A stretch of DNA of 64,000 nucleotides from contig NW_026889803.1 of assembly GCF_033153115.1 (NCBI RefSeq), forward strand, positions 3,534,001 to 3,598,000, in the 5' to 3' direction. This document shows, piece by piece, positions 4,877-32,781 of the stretch. The notes under the pieces are model-generated. The model was not told where the DNA came from. It saw nothing but the letters and a program-made list of their open reading frames with translations, and ran no database searches. The stretch's first letter is position 1. Each line of letters begins with the position of its first letter. The translations under genes and the position numbers were made by a program. This DNA is from Saccostrea echinata. Its lineage: Eukaryota.

Positions 4877-6345
4877 CTAGGTCGGAACATTCTGAGCATC
4901 GTCGACCTTATTCCAGCTGGTACTAGAGCGCCTGAGCCCTGAACCTTTGGCGTTAGGTTTGCCTTTCTGTTTAGAGTCCTTGGCACTACCTACTTGTCGC
5001 TTGGTGTGGATGACCAACCCCAACGCCACAAGGGATAGGACGAACGTGGCGAACAACAGAGCGTAATTCACGATATCCAAAATCGTCATACATATGCTAC
5101 CCACAACAAATCCTGGAAAAAGAATCAAAATAGCGGTAAACACGTGTCGGAACATTCGTAAAATATCGCATATTTCGATTCTCTTCATAACAGTATAATT
5201 AATTGTCTTATCAAGTGAATAGAAGTTGATTACCATTATTTACAGTAATTTTGGGAGATTGTTTGTTTATATGCATAATATGTTCTGGGAAATTGAGGAC
5301 AATACCTGTTTGACCAGCTTTTTCACATGCATCTGGTTGTGGGCACTGTTCTTTATCATATAAGGACATTTTTACATCTGGAATAAAAGAATATAGTATA
5401 GATTATAGCACTTCCTGTGTCTTTGATTGATGGAAATAACCCAAAGTACAGGTTATGATGATCAAAAATCTTACTTTCATATGCTGTAGGAGATCCACAG
5501 ACGGCGTCTCCGTTCATGGTTATGTTGTTGCTCTCTAGCCAGGATGGGGGCCAGATATTGGTGCAAGTGCATGCCCAGGGGATGCCGTATAGTTCAACAG
5601 TCGTTAGGGAGTTGATGCCTTTGAACAAGTCCGTTGGGAGATATGTGAAGGGGTTATTGCTCAAAGAAAGATATGTCATCTTCTGAAGAGCGTAGAACAT
5701 ATCTGTTTGAATAGATTTTAGGTTGGCATTTTCGATTATAACACTAGTTACATTTGATTGTGAAAAAAGGGCACCAAAAGCAAATCCTCCTGAAACTAGG
5801 CGACTGTTCTTAATAACAAATTCTCCCCGGGGGTCCGGTACCGTGGTCATTTTTTCAACATTCATCCCTGTAAAGCTGTCTCCAACCATAGCGTCGATTG
5901 ATCCTCCAATAATCGCAAATCGGTTCAAATTCCCAAAATTTGAAAATACTTGAACAGGAAGTGATAAAATATCGCAATCTTCAATCGTCAGCTCCTCTAC
6001 CCAACCCATGTCCGCAAAGGCAGCTTGAGTGATGATAAGTTGTCCGTTAGAGGTGCATCTAATGATCAGTTCCGGGGCATAATTGGAATCAAAACTCGCA
6101 GTACTGATGGAGGAAAATCCCGAAAACGTAGGTCCGGTCGGGGTACCGTTTGGGAGCTCTCCATCAACTTCCCTCAACAAAATCCTCTGGGGCTGGGGCG
6201 AGAATGTTCCGAAGGCCAAAGGGAGGGACCAAGCTCTGGCGTTACATGTGTGTAGGAGCTGTGAGGAGTCGTAACTACAACCCTGTGGATTACCGTACAC
6301 CCTCGAACACACAGCTAAGACCACGAGGACAGAAATTAGAGACAT
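4877..6345 (-). CDS. LRR single-pass membrane protein, paralog 1 (392 aa)
   Basis: Exons 6345-5475, 5377-5306 (72 nt), 5112-4877; GT-AG phase-1 introns, total 1179 nt in frame. Signal peptide, NPQGC cap, LRRs (YLSLSNNPF), LRRCT (PWACTC..VC..QC), TM helix, tail ending RRSSTSWNKVDDAQNVPT. Confidence 0.9.
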
Positions 6346-8173
6346 AATTGTCCAGTTTTTTCCTCTGTCTTTCAGAAATTACATTGAAGATATTTTTATC
6401 TCCAAAATCCAGTGGAATGAAAATGGCCGTGAATTTGCCCAGAAAGGTCTTTCAATATTAACTTGAAATGTTCTTGTATCCAGTGATCCGTGAAATCATT
6501 AAACACTGCAAAGGTAGATCACACTCAAAAGTTTATAATTCTTATTGATTTAAATTCTTAAATATGGAACACGGTTTTCACGGATAAAGACTAAGAAGAT
6601 TGAAAAATAAGAAAGACATTTAACCTGTTTATTCCAACGATTACAGAAATTGTTGGCACAGTATAATTGTAAAATTAATATGCATTGCGGCTTGAATATT
6701 TCTTAAATTAAAAATTCATAAATTAAACCCAAGTACAAAATACTTGCATGGCTTCCTCTGAAAAAGAAGGGGAACACAATTGATAGATGTTAAGAATACA
6801 AGCAGAAATTAAAGAAATCTAAACATTTTTTACATTTCCATTTTTTAGTAGAAACTTCAAAACACACATACTGAGTGTCCAGTTCTTCAAAGTTTTAAAA
6901 TGTTGGAATATGCTCAAAGTATTGCGATGTGTCCACTATTTTCAGCAAGACACACCTTTAAAAAACAAAGACAATAAAAATTCTTCAGAGGAAACATTTT
7001 ATTGTTTGTATTCAGTTTTTCTGACTATGGAACAGGTCCTAAATCCCTTTGAATTATAAGTGGATTACAGGTTTGTGCTCAGAAAGGACATTTAAGGTGT
7101 GAGGTCTTCTACGTTCTTTATAGTCTGAATCTCCATGAAAGCAAGAAAACAAAAGCAAACAGCGACCCAGTAGCCTGACATACATTTAACTCCTAAGCCT
7201 CATTACGATCAGCACTCAAGAGTTTAAGCTATAATTGGAAACAAATACCTCATTATGACATGTGGATAATCTTATATTGAAAACATAAGTATTTCAATTG
7301 ACCCGGTAAGGTAGTGGTTGGGCCATAGTTTTCTTTACTTCAATTTTGGGTTTCGGGTCTGCGTATTTAATGATTTTTGAGCACAATAGAAATTTTTTTT
7401 GCAGACCTCATATAGTTTAAATCACTGATAATAAGGAAGATTTCTGGTAATTTTAATAAACTCCCATTTCGAAGTTAATCTGGTAAAGCTTTTAGGCATG
7501 TTTCAGGAAGATAATATATACTGACATATTTTTTTTTTAAATCTAGGCTTACAAAGCAGGATCAGACCAATCAAAAAGTTCCCTTTGAACATTGACTGGT
7601 GTTGATGAAATTCCATTTATGAATATTTGAACTTGTTCCGTTATTGAATGAGAGAAACAAAAAAAAATCAATGAAATATTTTTTTATCTCCTAAATGTCA
7701 TTGAACATACTAGTATGGAAAAGAAATAGGAACGCCCACCTCCATCTTCCGACAAGTATTACTAAGAAATTATCAATATAACATATTTTCAATGATTTTA
7801 TTGAGTATAATACATTAACATTATTAACATAAGTGAACTAGTGCACAAAGGTAAAAATCAATGTAACAAAATAATTAAATAATTTAACCAGCATCATACA
7901 TATAAAAGTTTCCATGAAAGTATCAATATCATAACATCATACCATATATCAAAAAATGGCATCTGAAAAAAAGACGTGTATATACATTACTCTACAATAG
8001 ATACCTAATGAACGTTTAGGTAGCTCTCACAAAATGAAACGCCTAGTATTAATGCTATTCTTAACGTTTAGAACTTGGAAAGATTTTGACATACATAACC
8101 ACGGATAAATACAAAACAAAGGCAAGATACTTAAAACGTGGAAGATATGTCAGAGCTCGTTAGACCCTTAATC

Positions 8174-9646
8174 TTATTCCCATCCAGTTTTCGTTGGGAA
8201 CGGGGGTTTCTGTGAAGCCCCTCCTCCGCCTGCTTCCTTCTTTTTCATCATCTCCTGCACCCGTCCCCATGAAGTGGCCCTCTTGTTTTTCAGCCTATTT
8301 TGGACATCTTTTAAGTCCTTGCGAACCTTGCAGATGATTATCAGGGCGATGGTAGATATGACGATTGTGATGACTACAATACCATAGCATATCAAGTCCA
8401 CCATCAGAATGCATGTAGCTGAACCCATAACGACACCTGGATAAAATATAAATTATAACCTTTTTGAATGTCTAAGTAATGATTTTTAGTTGACACATCA
8501 TTCTTGCTAACATATGGTTGTGGAAAAATAAAAATAAGAGGACGCTTCGTTGATATAGACATAGAAGTTGATTTTGAAATAAATGAAGGCTTTTAGCATT
8601 GCCTTACCTAAATTGGGTTCACAAGCGTTGGACTTTGGACAGACTTCATTCCAGTACTTTGTTGCCTTCTTATCTAAATAACATAAAATGTTCTAGAAAA
8701 CTGCAAAGGAATGAAAATATTGCATATCATTTATCACAAGTAAACAGAAATATTGAAGTTTCTTACAATTATATTCTGTAGGTGTGTCACAAAGTGGGCC
8801 ACCACTAAGCCTGAGATTCTGTTGAATGCTGTAATCTAGGAACCAGAGATTGTCACAAGAACATGCCCAATTGTTTCCCTCCATATTAACCTCAGTGAGT
8901 GCTCGTAGCTCATCGAAGATTCCCGAAGTAATATTTGTCAAGTCGTTATTAGCCAAGCTAAGATAGTGAAGACTAGTCAAGTTGGTGAATGTGGTTGGTG
9001 CAATATAATCTAGACTGGTTCTCTCCATGATAAGGTATTCCAAAGATGGTAGCGACCCAAACAGGCCGTCGGGTAGGGTACCTGTGATTGGACAATCCCT
9101 TATGATGATTCCACTCTCCTCTGCCGTGATGTTCATTTTGGAGATTGTCAGTCCTGTGAACGTTCCCGCGTTTATTGAGGTTATTTTCCCGCCTTGAATG
9201 GTCAGCTTACTCAAGGTCAATCCGTTAAATACGGAGGCTGGGAAGGATGTGATGGGACAGTTTATAATAGCTACTTCTTGTGCGTTTGGAAACTGCGAAA
9301 ACGCATTGGCACCGAAAGAAAAGGTAGAAATTCCTGATTTGCATTTGATAGTTATTGTATGAGGAAATTTAGGACTAAATCCGGAAGTTGAAGCACTTGA
9401 AAATCCTGTAAACTGACTGGATTGAAATGAGCTCTGATATTCCACAAACTCCAGTCTCTGCCATGACAGGGTTGTAAAGGAAGAATGAGACAAAGGCGTT
9501 GAGAATGACCCATAGGTACACTGAGTCGGTATGGTGGAATCCAGGTTTCCGGGCTTCGCCACACAGCCTGTGGGGTTCGCCCTTACCCAAGGAAATAACG
9601 ATATACAAACAGCTATCAAAAGTTTGTCCGCCATTTTGACGGACAT
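8174..9646 (-). CDS. LRR single-pass membrane protein, paralog 2 (402 aa; 398 aa if ATG at 9634)
   Basis: Exons 9646-8767, 8673-8608 (66 nt, YKKATKYWNEVCPKSNACEPNLG), 8436-8174; GT-AG phase 1; LRRCT NNWACSC; TM; tail KNKRATSWGRVQEMM...QKPPFPTKTGWE. Confidence 0.92.
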
Positions 9647-10619
9647 GTTTTATTTGTGCTAGCTGTTTCCTACATGGTATAAAAGTTGTCCTTCACATTG
9701 TTAATTAAACGCATGGCCTAAGACCAAACCTAATCCATAACCTACTTAATTTAAGCTATTAAAAACGCAAGCATATATGAACTTTCTCAAGAAGTATAAA
9801 GGATTATGCATTTTCATAAGAGATTATTGAGACTCTGGACTGAGTAGGTCAGTCGTGATTAGATTGCTTTTTGGATTACACAGGGGATTTAAACAAAAAA
9901 TTAGAGATAATCTAGTTCTAAATGCGAAATCAATGATTAGCACACCAGAGAATGAAATTAATTTAGGGATGGTAATATATCATTATCAATTTCACTTAAA
10001 AGAAAATCACAACTGCAAAACAAAATAGCTTAGTTTAAAACTGATGAACGGTACTTATTTACTAGTAGTATGTAATGCCGGTATATTAATATATACTTTT
10101 GCTACTATATACACTGATAAACATGTATTTGTAACAAAGATTTGCATCAAGCAAAAGCTATAAAACAACGATCGTGTTTATATGCAAAAATTTTGTTGTA
10201 TGGCTAAGTATCGCAAACACTTCCGAAAACTGACCCGAAATTTATGCCTCAAAATGCGAAATTACAGGAAACCGAATTCAAAATTTATGAGTCGTAATGC
10301 AAAATTTATGTGCCATGTGCATGTTTTACAGTATCCGTTTGCTATACATGTACCCACTCATGATGGTAGATGCAGCCCGAGAAACAAAGACCTATGAAAA
10401 TAAATGGCCGAATATATAAAACAGGGATCCTGGTACTTTTTCCTCTTATCAAATTAAATTTAAAAAAAAAATGTCAGGAATTCTCAAAACCTATCATGCT
10501 TCTTGAAATGGGACGTCCTCGCCACTCGATATAAAATTCAAACTTGCAAGGACTGTATTTGTATTATTCTTTTATAGTTCTTACATAAACAATTCAACCC
10601 AATGAAAAGGCTGTTCAAA

Positions 10620-11990
10620 GAAGCATCTAATCACCACTGTATCTTCTAAGAAATCTGTATATTTCTTAATTACTCTATCATCTGTTGTGAACCCTTCCAT
10701 CAACTCTACTTCATCCTCCATCTGTAACGAACATCTGTACCACCTTCCAAGACGTTAAATGTGTCATCTGAAATGACATCTATTGTATCAGCACCAAAAA
10801 GTAAATTGTATATTATCTTTGATAAATTCTTCTTTATCATCTGTTATAAGCATTCATGTTCATTTCCCAATCAGTTTTAAAATCACCCCCAAAGAAGACA
10901 AATAAATTATCTCTATTGAACCCATATTTTATCATCTCTCTAGATAAACTGTATCGGCTCCCAGAAAGTTTAATGTATCATCTCTAATGATTTCAATCAT
11001 CTCCCAAGTAGTGAACTGTTTAACCCCCCCCCCCCTCAGGAAATTAGGTGTATTATCTTTTATGAACTCTATCATCTCCAATAAACCGTTCACGGTAGCT
11101 CAGTCGGTAGAGCGCTCGCTCCGTGATGGGGAGGTCGTGAGTTCGAATCTCGGACCTAAGTCGATAAAAAATGGGTAGCAACTGTTCCTTCGCCATGCGC
11201 TCGGTACTTTGAAGTGAAAGTTGCGGGTCCTTCGGATGAGACCTTAAAAACCGAGGCCCCGTGTCACGGCAGGCGTTGGCACGATAAAGATCCTTCACTG
11301 CTCAATGGCCCTGAGTGCCGAGTAAAGGTCAAAATTTGAAGCCCTTCACCGGTATATGGTGACGTCTCTATATGAGTGAAAAATTCTCGAATGGGAAGAA
11401 AACCTTATGACCTCCAAAAAATTTAACTGCATCATCTATAACGAACTGGACGTTATCAACTCCCAATTAGTCATCCGAATTAGCTCTCAGAAAGTCAAAT
11501 GTATCATCTCTAATGAACTCTATCACATGTATTGAACACTTCTATATCATCTCCCAGTAGGCCTACTATATCATCTCCCATTAAGCCAATTGCATCTCTT
11601 CCCAAGATGAACTCTACTCTATAATCTGTAATATCTCTTCTGTGTCATCTTTCGATATATCTAAATCTAATGAATTCATGTACATGTATCATCTGTTATG
11701 GACTCTACTGCATGTATCATCTCATAATAATCTACTGTTCCTCTCCAAATAACAATGCTTCATCATTTGTTGACTTCTCAAGAAGGAAGAAGTCAATCGA
11801 ATCACCTCCCAAGACGTCGATGTATAAGATTTACTTTTATCACTTTATAAGAACTGCATCACATCCTAAGAAGTCAAATGTATCATCTCTAATGAATTCT
11901 TTCATCGGCAACTAACTCTGTTGTATCATTTACCAATAAGTCTACTGTAACTTCTTTAATAAAGCGTATGAAACATTTGTAATGATATCT
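10620..11990. repeat. Degenerate low-complexity tandem region rich in (a/t)tcatct / aactcta motifs, interrupted by a SINE
   Basis: Recurrent tcatctc, aatgaactct and aagtcaaatgtatcatctctaatgaa (two near-identical copies ~11490 and ~11870). Confidence 0.55.
11086..11411 (+). mobile_element. tRNA-derived V-domain SINE (BivaV-SINE-like), near full length
   Basis: Box A TAGCTCAGTCGG, box B GTTCGAATC, V-domain-like core tcggatgagaccttaaaaaccgaggccccgtgt...taaagatcc, tail gacgtctctatatgagtgaaaaattctcg; candidate TSD ctccaataaa (11076-11085) / ctccaaaaaa (11412-11421). Confidence 0.85.
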
Positions 11991-12456
11991 AAATTACCAG
12001 CGCCGAAAAAAGTCTTTGAGAACCATTCCTAATTTCCTATTCTAGCATCTGTTCTAGATGTCTTATAGTTGTAGTAGCTTTTCTTAACCACTGTTTTTAT
12101 CGTCAGGCTTAAAGAATTAACGTTCGTCCATTCATTTACTGCGTTCACATTCACATTATCGGGTAAAAAATCTAACAGGACAAATATACATCATGAAAAC
12201 GATTTATACAAGAATCCTGTATTTCATAACAATTGAAATGAGTTGTAACAATTTATATTAAAAAATAAGCAAAGCAGAAAAACATGATCATTTTAGTGAC
12301 AACAAACAACAAAACGAACACGAGAAATATGATTAACAATCGGTTATCAAAACCAAAAGAAACAATTGCTTATTCATGAAAATATTAGATTAATCATACA
12401 ACATTCACATGAGTTCATAATGATAATAAAAAAGAATAATCTTATTCATTCTTGTT

Positions 12457-13892
12457 TTAGATCCATCCGTTTTTGCCGACTGGAGGTTTTTGTTTTGCTC
12501 CGCTCCGTTGTTTCATAGCTTCCTGTACCCTATTCCAAGAGCTGGCCCGTTTGTTCTTCATTCTTCTCTGTACCCTTGTGAGTTCTTTCCGAGTCTTACA
12601 GATACAGCCAAGTGCCAAGCAGGAGAGGACGAGGATGATTAAAAGCAAGATGAAGCTCATCAGTTGGTATAGTGGCATACAGCTACTACCCATAGCCAGT
12701 CCTAAAAAGCCAAAAATATATATAGATCTACCATTTCTTTATAGTCCAGAGAAAATCATTTTCCTTTGATCTTTTTCGACAATTAAAATATCAGAATTTG
12801 TATTCAATGACTCTTGTTTGAACTCGTGTATTCTATATTTTTATATATAATGTATACGTCATATTACTCACCAACTGTATCACCACACACGTCCTCAGTA
12901 GCACAGATCTCTGAGTAGTACACCGTCACCCTCTTTGCTGAAAACACATTAAAAAATTGATAACTGCTTTACATATCAGATCTCTTTACAAATAAAAGCA
13001 TTTCATTCCTGACAACTGATAACTTACTGTCGTGAGAGGCGGGGGTTCCACACAGAGGCCCTCCCAGCAGATTGATGTGGTTCTCAGCTGTGTATTGGAG
13101 GAACCACAGATCGCTACACGTACAGGTAAACTTGTTATTCGCTAGATCCACATAAGACAGACTCTTCATATTGGTAAAGATGCCGGTAGTTATGTTAGTA
13201 ATCAGGTTGTCTTTTAGACTCAAATATTTGAGGTTAGCCAGACTTCCAATGTGGCCGACAGTGATGGTGTTCAAATTAGCGCCATTAACGGCTAGAGATT
13301 CCATGGACGTAAGGCTATCGAATACTGTTTCTGGAAGGCCTGCGGTGAGAGCACTGTTGATAGTTATACCACCAACAGCCCCAGGAATAGAGAGTCTGCT
13401 TATGTTAAGACCACTAAAAGCATTAGCATCAATAGAGTCTATTTTCCCGCCAGTGAAAATTAAATGATCCAAGAAGTGATTGGGGAAGGCGTTTGCAGGA
13501 ATTGACGTGATCGGACACTCCTGAAACTCTAACACCTGAAGAGTGGGAAACTGAGAAAATGCATTGGCAGCAACAGTGAAAGAGGTAATCCCAGGTTTAC
13601 AGATAATGGTGAGTGAATGTGGATAGGAAGAATCAAAAGAGGCGGTAGAGGCTGAAGAAAATCCCGAAAACTGACTCGATTGGACACCAGTCTGGTACTC
13701 GATCATCTCCAGTCTCTGCCATGAGAACGTAGAAAATGTGTTGGACAGTGTTCCACCTCCAGGAAGTGTACACCGAACAGGACGGACGCTATCGTAGTTT
13801 CCCGTTTTTTCCGAGCATGTTCCGGGATTTCCTTGGGTGATGGTAAATGTTAAGAAACCTAGGAAAAGGCAGAACCACTTCCCAGCCGCCAT
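12457..13892 (-). CDS. LRR single-pass membrane protein, paralog 3 (391 aa)
   Basis: Exons 13892-13028, 12937-12872 (66 nt, TKRVTVYYSEICATEDVCGDTVG), 12701-12457; GT-AG phase 1; tail KNKRASSWNRVQEAMK...QKPPVGKNGWI. Confidence 0.92.
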
Positions 13893-14269
13893 TTTAGCTG
13901 GTCTGCTTTCCGCGCTTTCTTTCTTCGTGTAAAGTTCCCTTTAACCTCAATCTGAGAGCACAAACCAGTGCCAATATTTCACTTCATTTTAGGCTAATCT
14001 TCAAATGTAAGTTCAATAATCTCCATGATCGAACACAAAGTAAAACGATTAAATTGCTCTCAATATTTTTACAAGAAATTTGGGATTATGTTTTGGAACT
14101 GGGCATTTATATCAAGTGTGAAAGTATATCGAGACGATTCAAAAGAATTTCGCATCAATTTCTTTTTTAAATCTGAAATTGCAAAACTTCAAGTTAATTT
14201 TAAGACATAACTCAAAAAAGAAAATAAAATGTCATAAAATAATTTCTTTACTTTAAAGAATACATATCT

Positions 14270-14271
<2 letters not shown>

Positions 14272-14354
<83 letters not shown>
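14272..14354. repeat. (TA)n microsatellite
   Basis: Direct reading. Confidence 0.97.
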
Positions 14355-14357
<3 letters not shown>

Positions 14358-15233: not shown

Positions 15234-15361
15234 NNNNNNNNNNNNNNNNNNNNNNNNNNNNNNNNNNNNNNNNNNNNNNNNNNNNNNNNNNNNNNNNNNN
15301 NNNNNNNNNNNNNNNNNNNNNNNNNNNNNNNNNNNNNNNNNNNNNNNNNNNNNNNNNNNNN
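15234..15361. other. Assembly gap (128 N)
   Basis: Run of N. Confidence 1.
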
Positions 15362-17757: not shown

Positions 17758-19286
17758 TCAGACCCATCCACTCCCCCTTCTTTGTTTCTTTTCACCACCC
17801 CCGCCGCCGCCCCCACCCTTTTTGGCACCTGGTGGTGGGGGTCCCTTCCTCGTCTTTTTGACTGGTCCAGCCAGAGCATTTTTCCTCATGTGTAAGATAC
17901 AAGCAAGTGATACAATACATATAATTAGCATCACAAATATAAGACCGAACCCGACAAGATGTCCTAAGGGGAGGCAAGTGGAACCGATAGCCACACCTGG
18001 AAGAGAAAGAAATGTACGCTATAAAAGATGTACTGGAAGATGTCTTGAAAGAAGAACCATGCAGTAGTTAATTCTGACAATGCTTTATTCTGTATTTCAA
18101 ATAATATTTGTTTGGTATCAAAACATCTATGATGTTTTCTAAAGCTGGGTTACAGTTTTGCCAGCGATTTCTAGCAACTGGTCATCAGCGAATCTAATCT
18201 TCAAAGTATCTTACCCATGGTGTCTCCACATACGCTACTTGTCACGCAGTTCTGATCATAATACTTCCCAACAAGTGTGCCTAAAATGGACATTAAAAAG
18301 ATTGTTAGTACTGGAAAAAGGATTCTATTAATGTAAAAGTAGCTATGAATATGATTTCAACAGACAAGAAATATAAATAAACATCTCTGTTTTAACAAAG
18401 AAAGTTACTCACCAGCAACGTCAGCAGGGCCGCTGCAGATGGCAGCACCTTGAATCGTGATATTTTTCAAACTTGCTTTCGGCCACCACCACACGTTATC
18501 GCACGTACATGTCCACTGGAAAGAGGTCTGGTCAAAAATTACCAAACCATCAAGTCCTTTGAAGAAGGTAGTGGGGATAGTATCGACTATAGAGTTGCCC
18601 TTCAAAGAGAGCGAGTGTAAACCAGTGTTGGACGAAAACACTGTTTCAGCAATGGATGTCAGTCCAACATTTTCAACGCGGATGGATCTTGTTTGATTTA
18701 TGGGTGTAAAAACGTTGGCTGGGAACCCTCCACTGAGGGTCAGATCTTTGATTGTAAGTTCTCCAGCGGCGTCGGCATACTTGTCAATCGGTGCTATTGT
18801 CAGTCCCTCAAATGTAGCAGCATTCAGAGTCAAGGTCCCTCCGCTAATCGTCAATCTGTTCAGGGTTCCAAACGGCGAGAAGACGTTGGCGGGAAGATTG
18901 ACATTACAATTTGAAATTTCGACTTCTTGGATGTATCCTAAAGTGTTGAAGGATGTAGATTGTAAATTTAACGAACCTCCTGTAGTGCAGAAGAGCTGAA
19001 GTGTTGGGTTTTTGTCGTGGCTTAGTTTTGTCGTGTCATAGGATCCAAATCCAGTAAAAGATCCTGCATTCATGTTCCCGTTGATTTTGGTTATTTGAAT
19101 CCATTGTGGTAGAGGGTCGCTGAACGTACTGTATGTTAGAGGTAAAGTGACGGAACCAAACGTACACTTGTAAAGATGAACTGAGTCCACTTCATCATGG
19201 TATGAACATCCGGTCGGAAAATTCGCTCCATTCACTACAATTATTAAAGACCAAAAGAAAAACAGAGCGCAATTTCCAAAAGCCAT
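17758..19286 (-). CDS. LRR single-pass membrane protein, paralog 4 (392 aa)
   Basis: ATG 19286; exons 19286-18413, 18280-18215 (66 nt, GTLVGKYYDQNCVTSSVCGDTMG), 17996-17758; GT-AG phase 1; tail KGPPPPGAKKGGGGGGGEKKQRRGSGWV. Confidence 0.92.
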
Positions 19287-20934
19287 TTTGAAAAATCTCA
19301 CTCTTTACTAATTTTCTCTTTGTTTTTCTAAGTCTCTTTCTGTCACATATTATCTGTAAAGTCTCTTCATATATATAAATGTGACTGTTCTAGAGTGTAC
19401 ACTTTTCCCCTGACCTTATTAGTTCGTCTCCCAAAGCCAGCTTTTGTAATAATCGTATTACTTGAAGTAAAACACAATTGTTGCAGAGAATGCGAGGCAT
19501 AGATTTTTTCGTAATCTCCTATTTAAATTTGGATCAATATTTCAACGTGATCATGAACACGATTTAAATTTAATCTCTTGAAACCTGTTCAAGTTCACTA
19601 ATCCGGAGAATTTTATGAAGAATGGGTAAGAGGGAAAATATTTTCCTTGGAAAGAACGAAATATTGGTCATTTCAGCCTATCCCTATTATGTCTTTGGTT
19701 TTTATTTTCCTATATTCATAACACTATTGCAGTAAACACTTTGACAATCTCCAAAACAATATTGATACAACGTATTTCCTACATTACATTGTAAAGACCC
19801 CATACAATGAGTTAAATGCACGTACTTTTTTTTTACTTTTATCAGCGCAGTAAATACTTTCAGAAGTGATTTCTAATTTTAGTTAATTCTGCTTAAACAG
19901 TTTGAACATTATTTGATAACCCTTTTTTTGGTTTAAGACGCAGTACCCAGTTTTATTCTTCCAACCGGCTACCGAACTATTCTACTCTTCAAACAGGATG
20001 TATTTTTCACAGATATCAGCCAAGTTAATTAACCGTATTTTCCTTTTGTCCATTTAGTCAGCATAATAGTTTTTCGTCCACTTACTTTATAATTTATATT
20101 CAGTTTGATTCTTTGTAATTTTTATAGTCATGAAAAAATATGAAGAAAAGTCTTATTCGATCTAGATCGTCTTAAATTCTTCTTTTAAAACTATGAAAAA
20201 TCCTAAGAAGTCTGGTTTCCAACCATATTTTCAACGCCTTATAGTGTATCTCAAAATATATTGCTAACTCATATTTTTCATTTTCTAATGAATTGAAATC
20301 TAAATTGAAAAAAAAATGAATTCATTTTATCTCAGTAGAGTACATTTTGAAAGATATCATGTCTAGTTCAATAAAGGAGGATCCATTCACAGAAATTATT
20401 TTGGATGTTGGAAGACATTAATTTGCATGATTAATTTAATATCATTGTCAGTGTGGTTAATTGCAGTATTATATCGATAAAATGAAAAGTTAAATTATAT
20501 CAAAGTAAGCCATTCTATTCGTAAAAAGTAAAACAGCATTTTTTAAAAACAGTTTTACCTACCCTCATGTTTTCAACGACTAAGACATAATTTGACTGCA
20601 TTGTAATAAAGGAGATCTGTAACAGTTGCCAATTGTTTCAAATATTGTTTATAGATTAATTGAGAGACTCCTACTGTAAAGTTGAAATCATGTCGATATA
20701 TATGCACAAATAAAAGCAGGGGAAATTCAAGCGAAACATGTTATATCGGTTTTATGTAATTTCATGCATAGATGTTTCTATGCATGATCATTGATTATAT
20801 ACATGTATGTAATCTTAGAAAAAAAGGTAATTAATTGAAACACATGAATAGAAGAAAAAGGATATTTCTTGAACCAAAATTTCTCTGATTTAGTTTAAAA
20901 AAACGTTACTGACCATGTAAGAAGTGACGTCCAT

Positions 20935-20979: not shown

Positions 20980-20981
<2 letters not shown>

Positions 20982-22105: not shown

Positions 22106-22405
22106 ATGCACGCACGTAGTATCGGGGGAGGGGGCTGTTAATCTTAATTGAAAGCTCCCCCTCCCCCTAATTTTTGTTGCAATATAGTCAAATCGTCCAA
22201 TGGGTATGCAATACTTAAGTATTTAAAAAAATGTGAAAAATCTGGAACCTAACCCAGGCCCCCCTTTCCCCCGAAATAGGATTTTCGAGTGGACCATCTC
22301 TTTTTTTTTTAACTTGTGAAATAATTTTCAGGTAACTTGTGAAATATTTTTTCGCCCTTCCCCACACACACGTACACTTTCAAAAACGATTCTACGTGCT
22401 TGCAT
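22106..22405. mobile_element. GC-rich MITE with 14-bp TIRs
   Basis: atgcacgcacgtag (22106-22119) versus ctacgtgcttgcat (22392-22405), 13/14 inverted match; internal G/C tracts. Confidence 0.65.
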
Positions 22406-22754
22406 TTGAAATTTTGTCAAAAAATAAATATGATCAATACAAAATAAAATTTTCAACTTGTATAATTAGAAAAATAGATTGTTGAAGACCTCAGGTTTGC
22501 TCCTTATTTTATTTCTTAATAACGAACCTTCAATATAAATTCAAACCTGATAAATTCGACATACATGTATTCAAATGCTTGTACTTCCTATAAGTAACAA
22601 CAATCATATACGAATATGTACAAAATAACAATACAAACACAACAAGCACATTAAGAAATTCAACTGTTTATAACGGTTAATGTATGTAAAACAAAAAATG
22701 ATACTGATCGAGTCATGTCTCAATCACCATCACCAAAGCGCTTGTCGGTTGTGG

Positions 22755-24349
22755 TCACCTTGCAACACCCTTTGGTGGTAGGGTGGCTGCCGGTGGCTTC
22801 TGCTTAGTGACCGCCTGTGAGTTAAGCACCTGTTGTATCTTTGACCATTTCTCCGTCTGCTTGGCTCGGAGCTTGTCGTGTTTTGACATCAGCTTCTTCC
22901 GGGTATGGATGAGGAGGATAAGGACGATTATAGTGAGGATTATAGCGATGATAAGCAGGAGGACAAAGAGGATTCTGAACCAGTGGTGACAGGAGTCTCC
23001 GAGGATGAGACCTATAAAAACACATAATTGTTCAGAAAATTATTTGAAATCAGTTGTACATAAATAATGAAGACATATTTTGTTGTCAGGTGATTAACAC
23101 TTCTTTGATAGCATATAGAGTGAATACGTATGTTACCTGGTATCCCATCGCAGATATCGTAGGTCACACAGTTTTCAAAGTAATACTTCTCAGCATTCTT
23201 GGCTGAAAAAAAATTTATAAAAGGCCTTTTATATTAGTTTCAATCTCTTGCAAAACAGACACTAACATTAACTACTGCAGGTAGAAATACAATTTTTCAA
23301 TGATTACAGCTAACTTTTTTACTGAAGAAAGAATTCTTTCCATTTTTTTGAAGCAATATCGTATAATGCAGAAAGGTTACTGGTACAAGGTACATTGAAA
23401 ACATACATCCTGTCTAAAAATACATCTATGCGTTTCATACTTTGAAAACCTTACCATTAGTACTCATTGAACAAATGGCCCCATCCCCTAGAGTGATGTT
23501 GTGGTCAAGAAAGTGTTTGATGAACCAGACGTTTTCACAGGAACATGTCAGACTCATCCCACTCAGTTCCACGTACAACAGAGAATCTAGACCAGAAAAC
23601 ATGTTGTTAGGGAAAGACGTGATAGGGTTGTTTCTGATAATGAGTCGCTGGAGCCTGGTATTCTGAGAAAACATGGCGGTTTCCAATGTAGTCAAACCAT
23701 TGTTGTCTAGAATAATGGTGTCTACAGTTTTCAGGTGGTAGAAAAATCCGCTGGTAATCGATCCTCCTGCTATAGCGACATTTGTGAAGTTCAGAATACC
23801 TCTCGATTTGGTTAGCGTTGTAGATACAGTGATGTTGAAGTCGGCCATAGTATCTGCAGCTATTGCATCAATGGAACCACCCTCGATAGTTAATATGTTC
23901 AGACTTTTGAAATCGGCAAATATATATTCCGGAAGACCGTTTGTCAGCCTGCAGTTTTTTATATGCAGCTCTTGAAGGTACGACATCTGCGAAAACGTTC
24001 CCATTGAAATGATGGCTTGGCCCGAGGGACTTCCGGTGGAGCATTCGAGCTCCAGGTAGGATGTAAAGTCCGAGTCATGACTGCCTGTTGAATAGCTTCC
24101 GAATCCATTGAAGGACTTGGTTGGGGATGACACTGGTAAGTTGCCGTTGATATTTCTTATCTTAAGACGCTGGGGTATTGGGTTGGTGAAGGCGCTGTAG
24201 GTTACTGGCAGGGACATTACCGCAAAATCGCAGGTGTACAGACCACGTGATCCAGTTTCAGTGCTGTAGCTGCATCCCGTCGGTTGTGCAGCATTAACCA
24301 GGCAAGAGTAAAGAGTCAGAGAACATGCAAAAAACACAAAATTCCTCAT
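22755..24349 (-). CDS. LRR single-pass membrane protein, paralog 5 (405 aa)
   Basis: Exons 24349-23455, 23202-23137 (66 nt, AKNAEKYYFENCVTYDICDGIPG), 23011-22755. Exon 3 frame is not in the ORF track: GLILGDSCHHWFRILFVLLLIIAIILTIIVLILLIHTRKK...EKWSKIQQVL...QKPPAATLPPKGVAR*. Confidence 0.9.
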
Positions 24350-26252
24350 GTTCGATGGTTAGTCTTCAATTAGAGTTTCACATGGTTCTCTTCTGCTTGT
24401 GTTCTTTCCAATTTCAGTCGTTATATATTTTTTAAAATCCAACACGAATAACAATTCTCGTCTTATTGCATCTAGCAGGTAATCCTTTTCGAACCAAAAA
24501 CAGATTAACGATCAAATGGACTTTAATTTTCAGGGTAGTTATGAGCTGTGGAGCTTTTGATTAAATATTGAGGTTAATCATAGATTATTTAATTTTGCCT
24601 CACATATTCTTTCACTTAAATAAAAATGATTAATATATTCATAGTTATTAACAAGTTTAATTATACCTGTTTCGTGATCATGAAACAATGGAATTTTAGT
24701 CACTGATTTCCCTTTTATTATAATTGGCTGAAAAAAGTAAAAAGACAAAGATAATTTTTTTAAGAAAAATTAATGAATTAGTAATTATGAAGTCTTTCAG
24801 CCTCTGATCCCCAATTAATCCGAAAAAAATGAGAGCTGATATAAAGTAGGAATTTTATTAATACAGACATCTTTTACAAGTTACACGATTTCAGTTCCAT
24901 TTCATCTTAAGGCAACAATTACGTGAACCGTAAAAATAACTCTGTCCCTCTTTGTCCCCTAAGCATTTTCCTATTCCTTTACGTCCTCCGATTTACCCAT
25001 TCTTATTCATGCTTCAAACATTAGATTGTTCCAAGATAAACAAAATTTGAGGCGCAGTGACTTTAAGAAAAATATTCAAACTCAGAAGCCAAGGCCAAAA
25101 TGTGGATTTCGCCATAAATTATCCTAAGGTAAAAAAGTACAGTGACCTTGACCAAAAATTATGTCACCTGATTAAAGGTCAAAGTAAATGCTCTTCATTG
25201 TGTAAATTCCTTTGACAAAAAGTATATCTTTACTTTTCAGGACCCCTCTACACACCGTACATTGTTTTAATGCCGTTAGAATTATCAGCCATTATAAACT
25301 TAGCTCTATAGTGCATTTCTTAATTTATAATCAATTCAAACATTTTTAGCATATTTTACGTCGAGAATAAATTGATTTTAATAAACTTTTTAATATATTT
25401 TTCGCAATTTAAGCATATTTTATCAATAGTAATTTCTGTTCACCAGTACTTCATTTTCTTCGAACATTTTTTCATGGGAGTAAATGGTATCCCACGCAGA
25501 AGATAAAATAGATAAACTCAGTATTCACATTAATTATATCTCAATACAATATCATTTTCTCAATGAAAAAAAAAATCAAATTAGTGTATGAAGGACTCTT
25601 ATAGGAATCTTCACTTGTCGTCTACGTGTATGCATAAAATTTTAAATTTAATCAACACATCATAAAACATCTGGTACTGAAATTATCGTACTAGATTAAT
25701 AGGATACATTTCATCTTTTTGAACATGACATTCTTCAACCAACGTCGAAATATTCTTCTGTTGTCCTGAACATGATTTGCTTCTACCAACGTCGGTCTAT
25801 GACCGTTTGCTTCCTTCTTGGAATTAACGGTTATTGCTTAAAGAGAGACAACTCAGACCAATGAACAAGATGAATTCAGATGAGAAGCAAATGAAAAAAC
25901 AAAACTTAAGTTTAAAATATAAATATATACATGCACAAGATCTGCGTTGTAGATGGAGCCAAAGGATGAACTTAGTTGGACAGATGTATTCCTTTCTAAC
26001 TTGTCTGTCTGGATACTGAGTAAAGCCTGAACTTCAAGATACTCTTGACTTTTTAAACGTGACAGAATAGTCTCACCCTGTATAGGACAGCAATACAAAA
26101 AGCCAGATACTGCTGAAGATTCTAACAAAATGACAAATGTTAGGAAAGCATTAAAACGTATCTGCAAAATATCAGATAGTTTCTTCTGTCTGTGATAAAA
26201 AAAAAACAAGTATCTACAGTAGAGACGTTATGTGTGGTTATTTTCAAATAAA

Positions 26253-26301
26253 ACCGGAAATTTATTATTTCCAGACCAATCAGACAATCTCAAAATGGCG
26301 G
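26253..26301 (+). promoter_or_regulatory. Promoter-like motif cluster (ETS, CCAAT, YY1)
   Basis: accggaaat (26253), accaatcag (26275), caaaatggcgg (26291) within 50 bp; no host gene identified. Confidence 0.35.
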
Positions 26302-26823
26302 ATCACCACCATGAAGTCGAGCACAGAGAGTTTTAGAGGTTAGAGGTTGAAACGTCCATTTATAATGATAAGAAATCACCCAAAAGAAAAAAAGAACTTT
26401 CATAGAGAGGCAACATCTGAGATAATGTCAGACAGTAGGGGATCATAATCAGTAAGTCACTTTTTTTTATGAGAAAATTTGTAACGTATTTCTAACTTAA
26501 ATACAAACTACTCTAAAATGCTTCAAATAGATAATTGCATTCCTTGCATGCTAACTTTTTTGCAAGAGGTGTATTACAAATTTACAAACATTTCAGTTAT
26601 AATTCCGAAACAAACAGAAGTGATGTTATAAAGATTTTTCAGTTATTTCAAGTATGATTTAAATTCCTTGCTTAGATACAGCTATAGGCTTCTAAAACGA
26701 AATGACAAATATGAACTTATAAAAATAAAAGTGATGTCAATTAAACTCGTTTAAAATTACTACATATACACAGAGTTAACGCATTTTATCAACTTGAATT
26801 ATACTTTTGGTGTATTCACCAAT

Positions 26824-27591
26824 AAGGGGATGGACGAACAAGGTGTGTAAAATGCCCATAGCTTCAAAATGGTTTTAAAAAATATCCAATTTGTGAATTA
26901 CGTAATTAGAGTAAATTTATTGAAATTTACGAAATAATGACAAACAAAACTTTTCTGTGGGAATTCTCTCGCCAGAATTATTATATGACTAAAAAATTAA
27001 AATGTGGTATTCTTGGAATTCGAATCCAAGCAATAAAAATCCTTTTTTAAAAAGTATTATTTTCATATAGAGACTAACACGTTAACCATTACGCTACACA
27101 AGTCACGACTAATACATGTACCGACATTCAAATCATGTTTGTGATATGACCCTTGACTAAATGGACTTCCAATTATTACTCGGTAAGGTACGAGTGTTGT
27201 GTCATAAAAGTGTATTTCTAAAATTTAGTGGGTCTTTTCTCCATGTTAACAGAAAAATGGGGGGAAAAATGTATATTTGAATGCATACGTTGGGGATATA
27301 TTTTCAAAAAAATGGAGCCAAGACCGACTGATATAGAAAAAAATAGGTTATAGAATGAAGAAATTTTCATTTTTCCCTCTTTGATGTGTTTATGCTATTT
27401 AATAGACGAAATCATTTCAATCTTTGTGAAATTGTTTGAATTGTTGAGATTTTACATTAAGTACATGTACATGATAATGCTAGATGAAATATCAAAGAAA
27501 ACTACATGTATGTTATAACGGAGATTTCATTTTCACTTTCTTATTTGTCGCACTGTAGGCATTTTGCTTGCCTTGTTCGTCCATCTTCTTT
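26824..27591. mobile_element. Non-autonomous TIR DNA transposon (~770 bp, possibly Kolobok-like)
   Basis: aaggggatggacgaacaagg....aaaatgcc at the left is inverted at the right as ggcatttt....ccttgttcgtccatcttctt. Confidence 0.7.
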
Positions 27592-28670
27592 ACATCTCAC
27601 ACGAACGTCCGAATTTCAAACGTTTTCCAAGTCATTTTTTAACCTAGAACGTACAGTTCTGTGCCAAAAGAGAGGATAAAGATTATTACAAATTTAGTTT
27701 TTAAAAAAAAAATGGTTCATCATTTACATCAGTTCTGAAATTCAAGATTAATGTTGTCCATATAATTCAATGTGCGTATATGATACGCACTTAAATTACG
27801 ATAATTTTTTGATACCAATGCTGATCAGATAAAAAGTATTGTTTTTATCAAATAAAACAATTTCTTGGATTATCAAAAAAATTTGTGGGAAAATCTGTCA
27901 AGAAACGTCATTCCAGTGATTTTACAAAATGCTGTTTTCAATGAAATATATAGAGAAAAAAAATAAAATTGTCTTCACTTCTGGCACACATCTGTACCTT
28001 GTGCTTTAAAGTGTCTACTTAGTACCTTAACAAAGGTTTACTAGATGTTATGCAATCTATGTACTGATGTGCGAAGTATTTCAAGCATTTTATGTTTCTA
28101 GTAAGTATAATTTGAAATCCGTGTTGTTGTTTTTTTTACGTTTATTACAGATTATCAACATAGTTGCAAACCACAGCCAAAATGTAACGATCCTCTCCCA
28201 TAGTAGGAGAGACCTGGCCCTGGGGCCATGAAACTTAGTTGAGCTAACTTCTGATCTCAGTCTTACTTTTCCTCTATCAATTCCTTTGATAAGTGAGACT
28301 GAGATCGGCTGCGTGACTGAGACGATGGACCTCATCTTATGTTACATAACATAAAAAGCTCATACATGATTGGATGGCGACTAGGTGACTGTGAGATAAA
28401 ACAGCAGCTTCTGTCAGGATATCATGTCACTGAACTTTTTCTATTAAATGTAAAGCTTTTGTCAACAGATCACATAATTACAGCAATGAGACAAATGTAT
28501 TAGATTTTCATATTGATTTATATGGCAAAACTTGTTCTTGTTTTCCTTGTACAACAATTAAAATGATTTTTTCTTCATGAAACATCATTTTTTTCTGAAG
28601 TTTTATTTAATTCTATTGTATATGTAAATAAATAATTTCAAAATATTATCCACAAAATTAATATAAATAT

Positions 28671-29981
28671 TTAAAGCGCCTTCTTGATTTCTGTGTTCTC
28701 TGACTGATCCGTGACAGCCCAAGTCATATTGGCTTTAGGTGGTGCCTTCTGTCCCCCTCCACCACCTCTTTTCAGAGCCTCTAAGACCCTGATGGCCTTC
28801 TCTCTTTTCCTAGTTTCGATTTCCTTTTCATTCTTGTACATAGATCTGCGATAGATGACGACGACCACAAAGGCAATCCAGGCGAGCACGAAAGACACAG
28901 AAGTGAAAGCGTATGAAATAATCTGATACCATTCAAAACAGTCGATTCCTATGGCGATACCTATAAATCAAACGGAAAACAAAGGTATTAAAGACACTAT
29001 AACGACATTAAAAAAAGAAGAGATCTTTCCATTTCGATCATTACCTGGTATACTGTTGCAGTTGTCTGTGCTTCTACACTGTTCGCCAAAATACTGGGCT
29101 GCTCTTTGACCGCCACTACAAAGAATGCTTCCTTTTACTCGCATGCGGTACGCAGAAAAGTGGTCAAGAAACCAGAGATTGTCACAAGAGCAATCCCAGA
29201 TAATACCAGAAATATCAAGTTCCGCTAATGATGTCATATTTTGTAGAAATGTCTTTGGTAAAGTTGTAAAATTGCTATTCGCCAGATTCAGTAAAGAAAT
29301 TTTATTGTTGTACAGAAAAGTGTTGGCATCGATGGTCGTGATCCCGCAACCGCTGATGTCAATGGCGTTAACCATTGGAAGAAGATCGAAGAAGCCAGAG
29401 GAGAAATTCGTTCCCACATTTGCGTTTTTTATGGTGAGCTTTCCTTGAGGATTGGGAACCCCAGACATCTTGGTGATATTTAATCCAGAAAATGTGTCCG
29501 ACTCTGTTGATGCTATTACTCCGCCTTCTATTGTCAACGAATCTAATTCTACAAATGTAGAAAACGCGCTGCTTGGAAGACCATTGTTGAAATTGCATCC
29601 AACCATTTTTAATTCATTAATAAAGTTCAGATCAGTAAATGTCGTACTGGATATTTGTATCGTCCCTCCTGTTTTGCATCCAATTTCTAAATAATTTGTG
29701 TAGTCTCCATTTACAGCTGAATAGTTGAAGGCGCTGAAACCATTAAAGAGTTGTGATGCCGAAATGTCTCCAGTGACGTCATATATCACCAAACGTTGAG
29801 GTTCGGGGTTGCTGAAATTCACATATTCCAGTGGAAGAGTAATCGAGGCAAAATCACATATATAGAGTCCCATTGATGACGTGGATGTATCATAGGTACA
29901 TCCACTGGGAGCAGTTGCAGACGACACTATTCCAATAGAAAGTCCTAGTATTAGAAGTAGTAAGAAAGACATGATGGTCAT
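28671..29981 (-). CDS. LRR single-pass membrane protein, paralog 6 (408 aa, two coding exons)
   Basis: Exons 29981-29045 (includes the exon-2 homologous QYFGEQCRSTDNCNSIPG) and 28960-28671; 84-nt GT-AG phase-1 intron; TM; tail KREKAIRVLEALKRGGGGGQKAPP. Confidence 0.92.
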
Positions 29982-30855
29982 TTATCTTGAAAAAGTTCCC
30001 CTATTGCTAAACGTTCGACTCACATCTTTCGATAGTTACTTGACTTAGAACCTTCACCTTTCAATACTTATATTCAGGTGTTTAAATATTCGCCGTTCAT
30101 CAATGAGATAATACCTGCGTGCTATGTGTTTTTATAAAGAATTAGATCAAGGCATATTAAGAAAATGATCAAATACACGATAAGTTAGGTTTGATGTGTC
30201 AATGTGGGTTATGTTTAATTTGGCGATTATTGTATCCTTGTGAACAAACGAAATACTTATTTTGTTTACTTTTAAATAATAAGTTTTTTTAGTGCCATTT
30301 ATCCTGCTTTTTTTTAATTTTTGTAAGTTTATTTGAAGCATGCACTAGGTTTTAAGCAAATAAATATTACAGTTTTTTATAACTTCATCGTCCGCATTGT
30401 CCAGCACAGTTAGTAAAAGAGGTAAATATGCTTTAAATTATCTTGATTAATGATCAATTCTGTTCTTTTTAATGATCATTATTAAATTCATTTCACACTC
30501 TTCAATTATTTTATATATGCGTATGACATAAAACTACAATTTAAAATGTTCTTGAAAGACCGGGAGCAGTTTGTCACATCGAAGTCACCCTAAGTAGTTT
30601 AAGTCTTCTGTCATGCCAAATATCTGTTGTGTCAACAACTATTTTTATGACTTTATATATTAAGTTCAAAAGCAAATAATGATCAGAAACATTTATGAAA
30701 GAATGTTAAATTCGGTCTTTTAAAATATACACCGAAAGGGGAGGTCCTTATTGATCACGGTCATTGAATTCTCAGTGAAAAAAAATAAATCGCCTTCGAA
30801 ACCCATCTTTTAAATGAAAGACTTCCTTTGCTAAGAAAATTTGACAGAAAGGAAA

Positions 30856-32781
30856 ATGATTTTAAGAATAATTTGTTTTTTGGCACTTCAATCTCTGTGT
30901 TATGGAGCTACACATCCTACTGGGTGTACCTACGAAGAATATACAAAACCAATAGGTGTGTACACTTGTGACTTTACAAATGCAACCTTTCCAGTGGCGC
31001 TAGGATCCTTTTCAAGTCCAAATCCACAAAGACTGAAAATAACTTTTTTCAATGGTAATTTGGTAAGTTCAAGCGTTTTCTCAGGATTTGGTGCATATGA
31101 TGTTTCAACGTTTGATACAAACTACAAAGCTTCTCTCGAGATTTTCTGCGCAACAGGAGGAACACTTGGGCTTGCTACAAACTCGTTTACCGATATGACA
31201 TACATTCAAGAATTAAGGCTAACCGGCTGCAATCTAAACAACGGAATCCCAGCAAATGTATTCAATGGAATGCAGTTGGATTATCTTCAAATCGACAGAG
31301 GGATCATCGCCTCAACTGATGCATCAAGTCTTGCTGGTCTAACGATCAAAAAACTGGCCAACGTTCCAAATCCAATTGGAGGTTTTACAATTCAAAATGC
31401 CCAATTGACCACCGGGGACTTGGCCACCAATTTCTTCTCGCCCCTCACCACCGTTGTATCCATCACAGTGGACAATGCAAACCTTGTCAATCTCACCAGT
31501 GGAATGTTTTCCTCCAATACCGCTGTACAGACAATCAACCTTTCACGGAACAAATTTACCAAGGTTTCCTTCGACTTGTTCAGTGGTTTGACTTCTCTCA
31601 GTTCCATTAATATGTCGGAGATCAGCTGGGACTGCACCTGTAACGATCTCTGGTTCCAGCATTCACTTTCTTCAAATTATATTAACTTATATGGAAATAT
31701 CTTGTGCATGTCACCCACAAGTTTTCAGTGTAAGTGAATATCAGATAAATAAATGAATAAAAAAAATAATTAAAACTGAAAAAGATTAAGTTTATTTGCA
31801 CATAATTAAATTATACTTGATATAAAACAGCATTTGTGTCATTTTAGATATGAAATGGACCCAATACTACTTCAATGTGTGCGAAAAGAAGGATTTCTGC
31901 TTTGGAATACCAGGTAAGATGACATATGTGTAAATTATGTAATTCTTAATTTAACACAACACAGACGTATCATGTTGTCCAGTCTTGAAACTTATATCAA
32001 AATGCAGAATTAATCCACATTATATGAGAGATTATATAGTAATCAAATATGAATACAAATCAAATTGATTATCTTGATTGTAACTACTCCTTTGTTATTA
32101 GCAAAGGTGCTTGAGGACAGGACCCCCCCCCCCCCCCCCGATATAGACCTCCGGGCCTTTTCGACTTTTTTTCTCATAAATTATCTTTCAATGACATATT
32201 TGTGATATAATTTATACCAACAATTATAAATTTTTATGTATAGGGTAGGGTAGTAACCTTTATAAAATGTTTGTTTAAGTCAATTTTCCGAATTGATGAT
32301 AAAGAGATTATATCACAGATGGGTCATCAATATATAATTTATGAGAAAAAAGTCGAACAGGCCTGGAGGTCTATATCGGGGGGGGGGGGGGGGGGGGGTC
32401 CTGTCCTCAAGCACCTGTGGTTAATAGTGAAACAGGAAACAATTTTCCAAATTATTTCAGAATTAAACTAAAATTAAATTTAGAAACTACTTTACCTCTA
32501 CAGGTGTTGTATCCAATATCTTTTGCTACACGTGGCATCAGATTTTATTCTACTTCCTGCTGATGATCGGTTTCACCGTGTCCGCCATAGCTGTTTTCAT
32601 CGTTGTTAATGTTCGACGGAAAATGATGCAGATTATTCGTGAAATCGAGGCCAAGAAGAAAAAAGCTTATCGCAAGGTCAAAGAGGCGCTTGTCCGTGGG
32701 AGAGATGGACAGCACGCTCCGGCATCTACTGCCATGTATGGTATGAAGGAGAGGAAATGGATTGATACAAACGTTCCTTAG
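30856..32781 (+). CDS. LRR single-pass membrane protein, paralog 7 (405 aa), inverted relative to paralogs 1-6
   Basis: ATG 30856; exons 30856-31729, 31848-31913 (66 nt, YMKWTQYYFNVCEKKDFCFGIPG), 32504-32781; GT-AG phase 1. Confidence 0.92.
32097..32424. mobile_element. Foldback MITE with ~110-bp TIRs in intron 2 of paralog 7
   Basis: aggtgcttgaggacaggac-C(n)-gatatagacctcc...tcgactttttttctcataaattat mirrored at 32307-32416; ttaa at the right flank. Confidence 0.85.

Follow-up and report, generated by a model that had tools for sequence, protein, structure and literature searches.

A cluster of seven diverged receptor genes, here called g1 to g7, lies at positions 4877-32781 of a 64,000-nucleotide stretch of DNA from the oyster Saccostrea echinata (NCBI RefSeq assembly GCF_033153115.1, contig NW_026889803.1, positions 3,534,001 to 3,598,000 of the forward strand); this whole stretch is referred to below as the window. 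The genes encode small membrane receptors with extracellular leucine-rich repeats (LRR), and they form a bivalve subfamily, as yet uncharacterised, within a familiar group of receptors, the LRR_Only type-I class. They do not amount to a system of a new kind, and the “undescribed system” of an earlier reading of the sequence (the original prediction) was too strong a term. The LRR_Only class has been defined together with its lineage-specific expansions and fast divergence (Dolan et al. 2007, PMC2235866). The oyster proteins have its defining features: LRRs behind a signal peptide, no other recognisable domain and a single transmembrane (TM) segment with a cytoplasmic C-terminus; the capped extracellular repeats and the short tail are likewise shared with the class (PMC2235866). 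The phylogenetic tree shows the seven genes to be products of old tandem duplication that predates the divergence of the oyster genera. It is held, with confidence only a little above even, that like other LRR_Only proteins (PMC2235866) they are adhesion or recognition receptors for endogenous ligands.

Seven gene models and their transcripts

The cluster is marked by seven open reading frames (ORFs) of 298-337 aa, situated on the minus strand at 5356-6345, 8693-9646, 12969-13892, 18405-19301, 23435-24349 and 28968-29981 and on the plus strand at 30841-31737. In full-length alignment the ORFs have 28-35% identity to the first one and share 20-21 invariant columns, including P20, five cysteines and the LRRCT pattern CxC...W...C. 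Downstream of each ORF sits an open segment with a hydrophobic 21-mer and a basic tail, and a small exon with a Y...C.....C motif is placed between the long ORF and this segment. Enumeration of GT/AG sites led to one consistent solution per gene. The typical gene has three exons and two phase-1 GT..AG introns, with a middle exon of 66 nt (72 nt in g1). The ORF list and splice modelling together gave seven intact paralogous genes, six on the minus strand and one (g7) on the plus strand:

g1, minus strand, exons 6345-5475, 5377-5306 and 5112-4877: 392 aa, from ORF and splice model
g2, minus strand, exons 9646-8767, 8673-8608 and 8436-8174: 402 aa, from splice model and RNA-derived contigs
g3, minus strand, exons 13892-13028, 12937-12872 and 12701-12457: 391 aa, from splice model and RNA-derived contigs
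g4, minus strand, exons 19286-18413, 18280-18215 and 17996-17758: 392 aa, from ORF and splice model
g5, minus strand, exons 24349-23455, 23202-23137 and 23011-22755: 405 aa, from ORF and splice model
g6, minus strand, two exons, 29981-29045 and 28960-28671: 408 aa, from splice model
g7, plus strand, exons 30856-31729, 31848-31913 and 32504-32781: 405 aa, from ORF and splice model

There are no internal stops in any of the seven models, and the predicted span and lengths (4877-32781, 391-408 aa) of seven intact, diverged genes were reproduced exactly. Full-length pairwise identity of the paralogs is 26-43%, the closest pair being g2/g3 and the second-closest g6/g7 (37%). An alternative in-frame donor in g1 would yield 389 aa instead of 392. 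The intron positions, said to be shared by all, are common to six genes; g6 has lost intron 1, and its exon 1 runs on into the Cys-pair segment, which in each of the other six is a phase 1-1 exon of its own, 66-72 nt long. Genes g6 and g7 are arranged head-to-head with 874 bp between their start codons (29982-30855), and this interval may be a shared bidirectional promoter region. The assembly gap (N) at 15234-15361 is intergenic, 1.3 kb upstream of the g3 start codon and 2.4 kb downstream of the g4 stop codon; it breaks no exon and no real ORF adjoins it. Within 3500-34500 no ORF of at least 120 aa was found besides the seven genes. Searches were run exon by exon and whole-protein work was carried out on database orthologs, while the joined models were used for local lengths, alignments and the tree.

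Evidence of transcription comes from a comparison of the 5,719-base stretch 8174-13892, which holds g2 and g3, with contigs of three public runs. Contigs of the first run (X1), at 99% identity or more, cover g2 and g3 exons only and jump from 8436 to 8608, 8673 to 8767, 12701 to 12872 and 12937 to 13028, which are all four predicted junctions of these genes; the skipped segments end in CT..AC, that is GT..AG on the minus strand. As the contig joints coincide with the predicted junctions, g2 and g3 are transcribed and spliced as modelled. In the third run (X3), which derives from a relative at about 91% identity, a 1259-nt contig lies on the first and last exons of g2, extends from the stop codon to a point 21 nt before the ATG and carries its own diverged letters at the position of the middle exon. 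No TIR or other domain is spliced onto g2 or g3 in the RNA-derived contigs, and the transcripts do not continue beyond the stop codon. In another oyster the ortholog of g6, P0116 (405 aa), is encoded on a 1328-nt contig that runs uninterrupted over the place of g6's single intron and therefore comes from a spliced transcript.

It is exceedingly improbable that the seven genes are decaying, non-functional duplicates or artefacts of gene prediction. Their high pairwise divergence would fit such an explanation, as would RNA support confined to g2, g3 and the ortholog of g6. It is opposed by seven intact frames with canonical splice sites, by the splicing of g2 and g3 in RNA-derived contigs, by similar-length orthologs kept across oyster genera and by sampled differences that are mostly synonymous. 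For g2 and g3 the explanation is excluded and for the other genes it is unlikely.

Protein architecture and place among known LRR proteins

The seven proteins are composed of a signal peptide, an N-terminal cap with one disulfide, eight irregular LRRs, an LRRCT, an extra Cys pair, a TM helix and a basic tail of 43-62 aa. A hydrophobic N-terminus precedes the first conserved cysteine. Ten cysteines are conserved in the ectodomain. The N-cap, repeats 2 and 3 together, and the middle exon account for two each; three more belong to the part of the LRRCT encoded by the first exon, and the last sits immediately before the TM segment. In the numbering of P0001, the Saccostrea cucullata ortholog of g2 (93-95% identity), the cap cysteines are C28 and C43, and the next conserved ones, C102 and C130, are located inside repeats 2 and 3. 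A single hydrophobic 21-mer at about residues 325-350 is followed by a tail with 10-16 Lys/Arg, the start of which is of [HKN]x[KR][KR] type in all seven paralogs.

Pfam searches of the window exons and full-length orthologs, with E values up to 1 considered, gave only LRR families above the cut-off (LRR_8, LRR_4, LRR_5); TIR, Ig, FN3 and kinase domains were not found in either set. Two other candidates were rejected: WBP-1 (PF11669) on the TM and juxtamembrane region, at 19.0 and 17.5 bits against a cut-off of 28.1, and a DUF4714 match on the TM segment and tail, which was below threshold. The domain order and the absence of TIR, Ig, FN3 and kinase domains that had been read from the sequence agree with both Pfam and the structural model.

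The fold was examined on an AlphaFold2 model of P0001 built from a 30-row alignment, with a mean predicted local distance difference test score (pLDDT) of 82.5. It comprises an N-cap hairpin, eight concave strands, the LRRCT and a short stalk. The concave strands start at residues 64, 97, 124, 147, 179, 204, 228 and 252, at a spacing of 23-33 residues. The solenoid, about 290 residues with eight repeats, sits near the membrane and is joined to the TM helix by the stalk, which carries the extra Cys pair. One continuous helix at residues 327-384 (pLDDT 85-93) comprises the TM segment and about 30 residues of the tail.

Foldseek and VIA-align placed the Nogo receptor first among the approximately 50 fold neighbours listed for P0001 (Z 21.6, root-mean-square deviation 3.5 A over 254 residues), the match covering model residues 20-307. 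Slitrk1 (Z 21.3 for LRR1), LRRTM2 (Z 21.0), Toll, VLRs, LRIG1 and GPIb-alpha follow within about 1.5 Z units of it at 15-22% identity. With so many LRR proteins nearly tied in score, the fold has to be regarded as a generic extracellular LRR fold without a specific known relative; this is the outcome of the AlphaFold and Foldseek check that had been proposed for the family. In a profile search of the PDB the 60 matches listed (LRRC15, LRRTM, TLR13, TLR3 and others) covered only generic C-terminal repeats and the LRRCT, at positions of about 188-291, and a whole-protein search of the atlas returned generic LRR clusters only. Full-length orthology to a characterised family was not found among the top matches listed in the PDB profile, atlas and fold searches.

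The closest fold neighbours differ from the bivalve family in several respects. The Nogo receptor (RTN4R, NgR2) is alike in its solenoid of about 8.5 repeats with N- and C-caps, but its identity to the family is only 16-19% and its LRRNT has four cysteines where the bivalve cap has two. Moreover, the Nogo receptor is anchored by glycosylphosphatidylinositol, while the bivalve proteins possess a TM helix and a conserved tail instead. Slitrks are set apart by their two LRR clusters and long tails, LRRTMs by having about ten repeats. No orthology was detected to Slitrk, LRRTM or Tartan/Capricious; nevertheless, the LRR ectodomains of these proteins bind protein ligands on the concave face and serve as a working analogy for a paralog-specific adhesion code. 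The findings that would have removed the novelty ascribed to the cluster did not turn up: no characterised full-length ortholog was found among the matches listed, g2 and g3 are expressed and no splice junction leads onto a TIR or other domain.

Distribution, constraint and putative function

A profile of the seven first exons, searched against the 923-Mb assembly, found the seven loci at E values of 1e-114 to 1e-124, and the next match, at 2e-14, was a generic LRR. As far as this search reaches, the seven genes thus make up the entire family in this genome. Relatives were detected in the oysters Saccostrea cucullata, Ostrea edulis, Crassostrea virginica, C. angulata and Magallana gigas, in scallops (Pecten maximus with two genes, Ylistrum balloti, Mizuhopecten yessoensis and one further species) and in the ark clam Tegillarca granosa. 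All of them are pteriomorph bivalves; the searches were bounded by word sharing and by the length of the match lists, and this taxonomic range is a lower bound. An old, lineage-limited family was thus rightly foreseen, but the proposed mollusc lineage has been narrowed to the pteriomorph bivalves in which members were shown. In a profile search of 1.84 billion representatives the best 150 matches were mostly giant multi-repeat LRR proteins, and at least 13 single-stretch members of the family were present.

In the maximum-likelihood tree each window paralog falls in its own strongly supported oyster orthogroup. The orthogroup of g3 has members in S. cucullata, Ostrea edulis, Crassostrea virginica and Magallana gigas, that of g4 includes P0104 and P0193, and the orthologs of g5 and g7 are P0208 (Crassostrea angulata) and P0194 (C. 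virginica), respectively; P0116 belongs to g6. The fastest-evolving paralog is g1, whose nearest relative (P0156) has 45% identity; the most conserved one is g3. Branches between groups measure 0.5-1.3 changes per site and those inside are short (about 0.2 from g3 to C. virginica). The separate orthogroups and the long branches between them show that the duplications are older than the oyster genera. Scallop gene B joins g5, g6 and g7 with weak support. The S. cucullata orthologs of g2 and g3 each lie on a 434,612-bp contig, which suggests that they share one contig.

The names given to orthologs in public databases (P0001, P0008, P0136, P0145 and P0167) are in conflict: SLITRK2, TLR13, LINGO-type, PLA2-inhibitor-like and LRRC26-like all occur, and some entries are uncharacterized. 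P0001 itself is called “SLITRK2”, the Ostrea ortholog “toll-like receptor 13” and one C. virginica ortholog “LRRC26-like”. Owing to this disagreement the names are to be taken as best-hit labels of an orphan LRR family and not as orthology. The papers found mention neither the LOC identifiers of the orthologs nor “LRRC26” together with oyster.

The coding differences listed between the window and the contigs comprise 21 synonymous and 5 non-synonymous ones in the comparison with X3, and 18 and 1 in that with X1, in total 39 synonymous of 45. As judged from sequence comparison, each gene is kept under purifying selection. The age and the purifying selection first proposed for the genes are borne out by the orthogroups across oyster genera, by the scallop and ark clam relatives and by the 39:6 ratio. 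Conservation is unevenly distributed along the protein:

g3 against Ostrea: ectodomain 81%, stalk 75%, TM segment 80%, tail 98% identity
g3 against C. virginica: ectodomain 84%, stalk 69%, TM segment 96%, tail 91%
g5 against its ortholog: ectodomain 75%, stalk 62%, TM segment 68%, tail 88%
g6 against its ortholog: ectodomain 77%, stalk 84%, TM segment 72%, tail 89%
g7 against its ortholog: ectodomain 83%, stalk 84%, TM segment 80%, tail 88%
g3 against scallop A: ectodomain 31%, stalk 56%, TM segment 60%, tail 48%

Site statistics were compiled for three regions:

Exposed x positions of the xLxLx strands: paralog entropy 1.99, ortholog variability 0.20
Rest of the ectodomain: paralog entropy 1.51, ortholog variability 0.20
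Cytoplasmic tail: paralog entropy 1.62, ortholog variability 0.10

Between paralogs the exposed concave positions diverge more than the remaining ectodomain (permutation P = 0.0002), and in this sense the fixed geometry with variable surfaces that had been ascribed to the receptors holds (1.99 against 1.51). Among orthologs these positions are not more variable than the remaining ectodomain (0.20 in both). Orthologs vary least in the tail (P = 0.0001), which nonetheless differs between paralogs; that the tail is the most conserved part among orthologs had been overlooked in the original prediction.

A role in innate immunity or allo-recognition, which had also been suggested, fits poorly with these data. 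Under such an explanation the proteins would be pattern-recognition or decoy receptors, TIR-less relatives of Toll-like receptors (TLRs) that bind microbial molecules and signal via a co-receptor. It is prompted by the presence of diverged, tandemly clustered LRR genes in a bivalve, very large TLR repertoires having been described for this group (PMC10279657), by the automatic name of the Ostrea ortholog and by TLR3 and TLR13 among the sequence and fold matches. These TLR matches are, however, limited to the generic C-terminal LRRs and the LRRCT. Toll-like receptors and Tollkin carry a TIR domain, whereas the bivalve tails of 43-62 aa have no TIR match and nothing follows the stop codon in the transcripts. 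Close copies in the genome number just seven, each window paralog has its own oyster orthogroup and no lineage-specific expansion is seen among the sampled sequences; furthermore, the concave face shows no excess of variability among orthologs and most of the sampled differences are synonymous. The combination of conserved tails with concave faces that vary from paralog to paralog but remain stable among orthologs speaks against an arms-race immune repertoire and in favour of stable endogenous interactions. An immune function is thus considered unlikely.

The tail has several features of its own: a basic start right after the TM segment, a [KR][KR]x[ST]SW[NG][KR]V motif, a QKPP motif and a GW[VI] C-terminus. 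The first motif, which lies in the juxtamembrane helix, looks like a basophilic-kinase site. It is present in g1, g2, g3 and both scallop clades, and in g5, g6 and g7 the serine is replaced by Glu or Lys. The GW[VI] ending is found in g2, g3, g4 and the scallop proteins and is presumably the ancestral C-terminus; the C-termini of g6 and g7 run on past W[AI], and the tail of g4 is Pro/Gly-rich and ends in GWV. An atlas search of the tail gave no usable match, and a word search with the tail only had scallop members only among its matches. The stalk Cys pair and the tail motifs correspond to nothing that the searches found.

Since the TM segment and tail are so conserved and the topology corresponds to that of the BK gamma subunits (PMC4197896), the main rival explanation gives the proteins the role of auxiliary or regulatory subunits that serve a multi-pass membrane protein, for instance a Slo-type K+ channel, in the manner of LRRC26, LRRC52, LRRC55 and LRRC38. 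The TM segment and the adjacent basic stretch would then dock on the partner, with the LRR cap remaining extracellular. Both groups are small LRR-only type-I proteins with a signal peptide, a capped LRR domain, one TM segment, a basic cluster right after it and a short tail (PMC4197896). Conservation of stalk, TM segment and tail above that of the ectodomain in g3 against scallop, as well as the tail being the most conserved part among oyster orthologs, speaks for this role; the “LRRC26-like” label of one C. virginica ortholog and the Pro/Gly-rich tail of g4, loosely like the polyproline tail of gamma1, point in the same direction. On the other hand, BK gamma subunits have six regular 24-residue repeats and a four-Cys LRRNT with two Cys pairs (PMC4197896), in contrast to the eight irregular repeats of 23-33 residues, the cap with one pair and the extra Cys pair after the LRRCT in the bivalve family. 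The bivalve tail is predicted to be mostly a long basic helix, and that of BK gamma is polyproline or polyacidic. No LRRC26-type chain appears among the 60 PDB matches or the approximately 50 fold neighbours listed, and the automatic names of orthologs conflict with one another. An auxiliary role is on this evidence possible, though on the improbable side. Decidedly doubtful is the idea that LRR-capped auxiliary subunits or co-receptors, of Slo-type K+ channels for example, originated independently in bivalves, with the stalk-TM-tail module docked on a multi-pass partner; if it were true, the tail and concave face peculiar to each of the seven paralogs would serve to tune a different partner or to sense a different ligand.

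Adhesion or recognition of endogenous ligands is retained as the favoured function. On its concave face each paralog would bind a ligand of its own that is stable in evolution, probably an endogenous cell-surface or matrix protein, and the stalk-TM-tail module would couple binding to a conserved intracellular or intramembrane partner. The family could then be understood as a small adhesion or recognition code and not as a fast-evolving immune repertoire. Several points weigh against this interpretation. The conserved TM segment and tail are no less compatible with an auxiliary-subunit role than with adhesion; the juxtamembrane tail helix is no more amphipathic than shuffled sequence, and the tails of g1 and g4 are devoid of most of the helix motif. 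Among the window genes transcription evidence covers g2 and g3 only, the RNA nature of the runs rests on the spliced joints and is otherwise assumed, and the substitution counts are a subset, namely the listed differences between the window and the contigs in the g2/g3 stretch. In addition, the orthogroups hold 2-4 sequences, which makes the site statistics coarse.

Surroundings of the cluster and significance

Three dispersed repeats were recorded in the spacers of the cluster:

11066-11405, g2-g3 spacer: dispersed repeat of about 330 bp, found at least 40 times in the genome at 93-96% identity
26821-27600, g5-g6 spacer: dispersed repeat of about 770 bp, found at least 36 times at 73-76% identity
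27678-28002, g5-g6 spacer: dispersed repeat of about 325 bp, found 3 times at 85% identity

They occupy about 340 of 2701 bases in the g2-g3 spacer and about 1100 of 4201 bases in the g5-g6 spacer. The spacers had been called filled with transposable elements; dispersed repeats are indeed present, but in the two spacers tested they account for a minority of the bases. The repeat at 11066-11405 has very high contig depth in all three runs, and a loose-end consensus beside it carries a tRNA-like GTTCGAATC box, for which reason it looks like a short interspersed nuclear element. ARAGORN found no tRNA gene anywhere in the window, the 330-bp repeat included. A perfect (TA)41 microsatellite is located at 14272-14354 in the g3-g4 spacer, upstream of the assembly gap.

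Outside the cluster, a 202-aa ORF at 35388-35996 on the plus strand matches Pfam Galactosyl_T (PF01762, E 2e-10) and is probably one exon of a beta-1,3-galactosyltransferase gene adjoining the cluster. Tandem repeats are found at several places in the window. A 21-bp CGCG-rich palindromic unit is repeated about 7 times at 624-769, and arrays with units of 138-473 bp lie at 36825-37782, 39278-39697, 48522-48968 and 50010-50974, those at 36.8 kb and 50.0 kb having similar units. At 59017-60250 there is a purine-rich satellite with a 26-bp unit in about 48 copies and higher-order periods of 186-389 bp, to which the peak of GC and AT skew at 58-60 kb is due.

For wider biology, the cluster is an ordinary lineage-specific expansion in the extracellular-LRR superfamily. 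For the bivalves, which are of commercial and ecological importance, it represents a compact, clearly bounded and uncharacterised receptor family with seven genes at one locus. The pattern of divergence, which points to stable interactions, narrows the experiments that are worthwhile, and the tail module is the most useful lead, as its conserved cytoplasmic motif offers a handle for finding partners.

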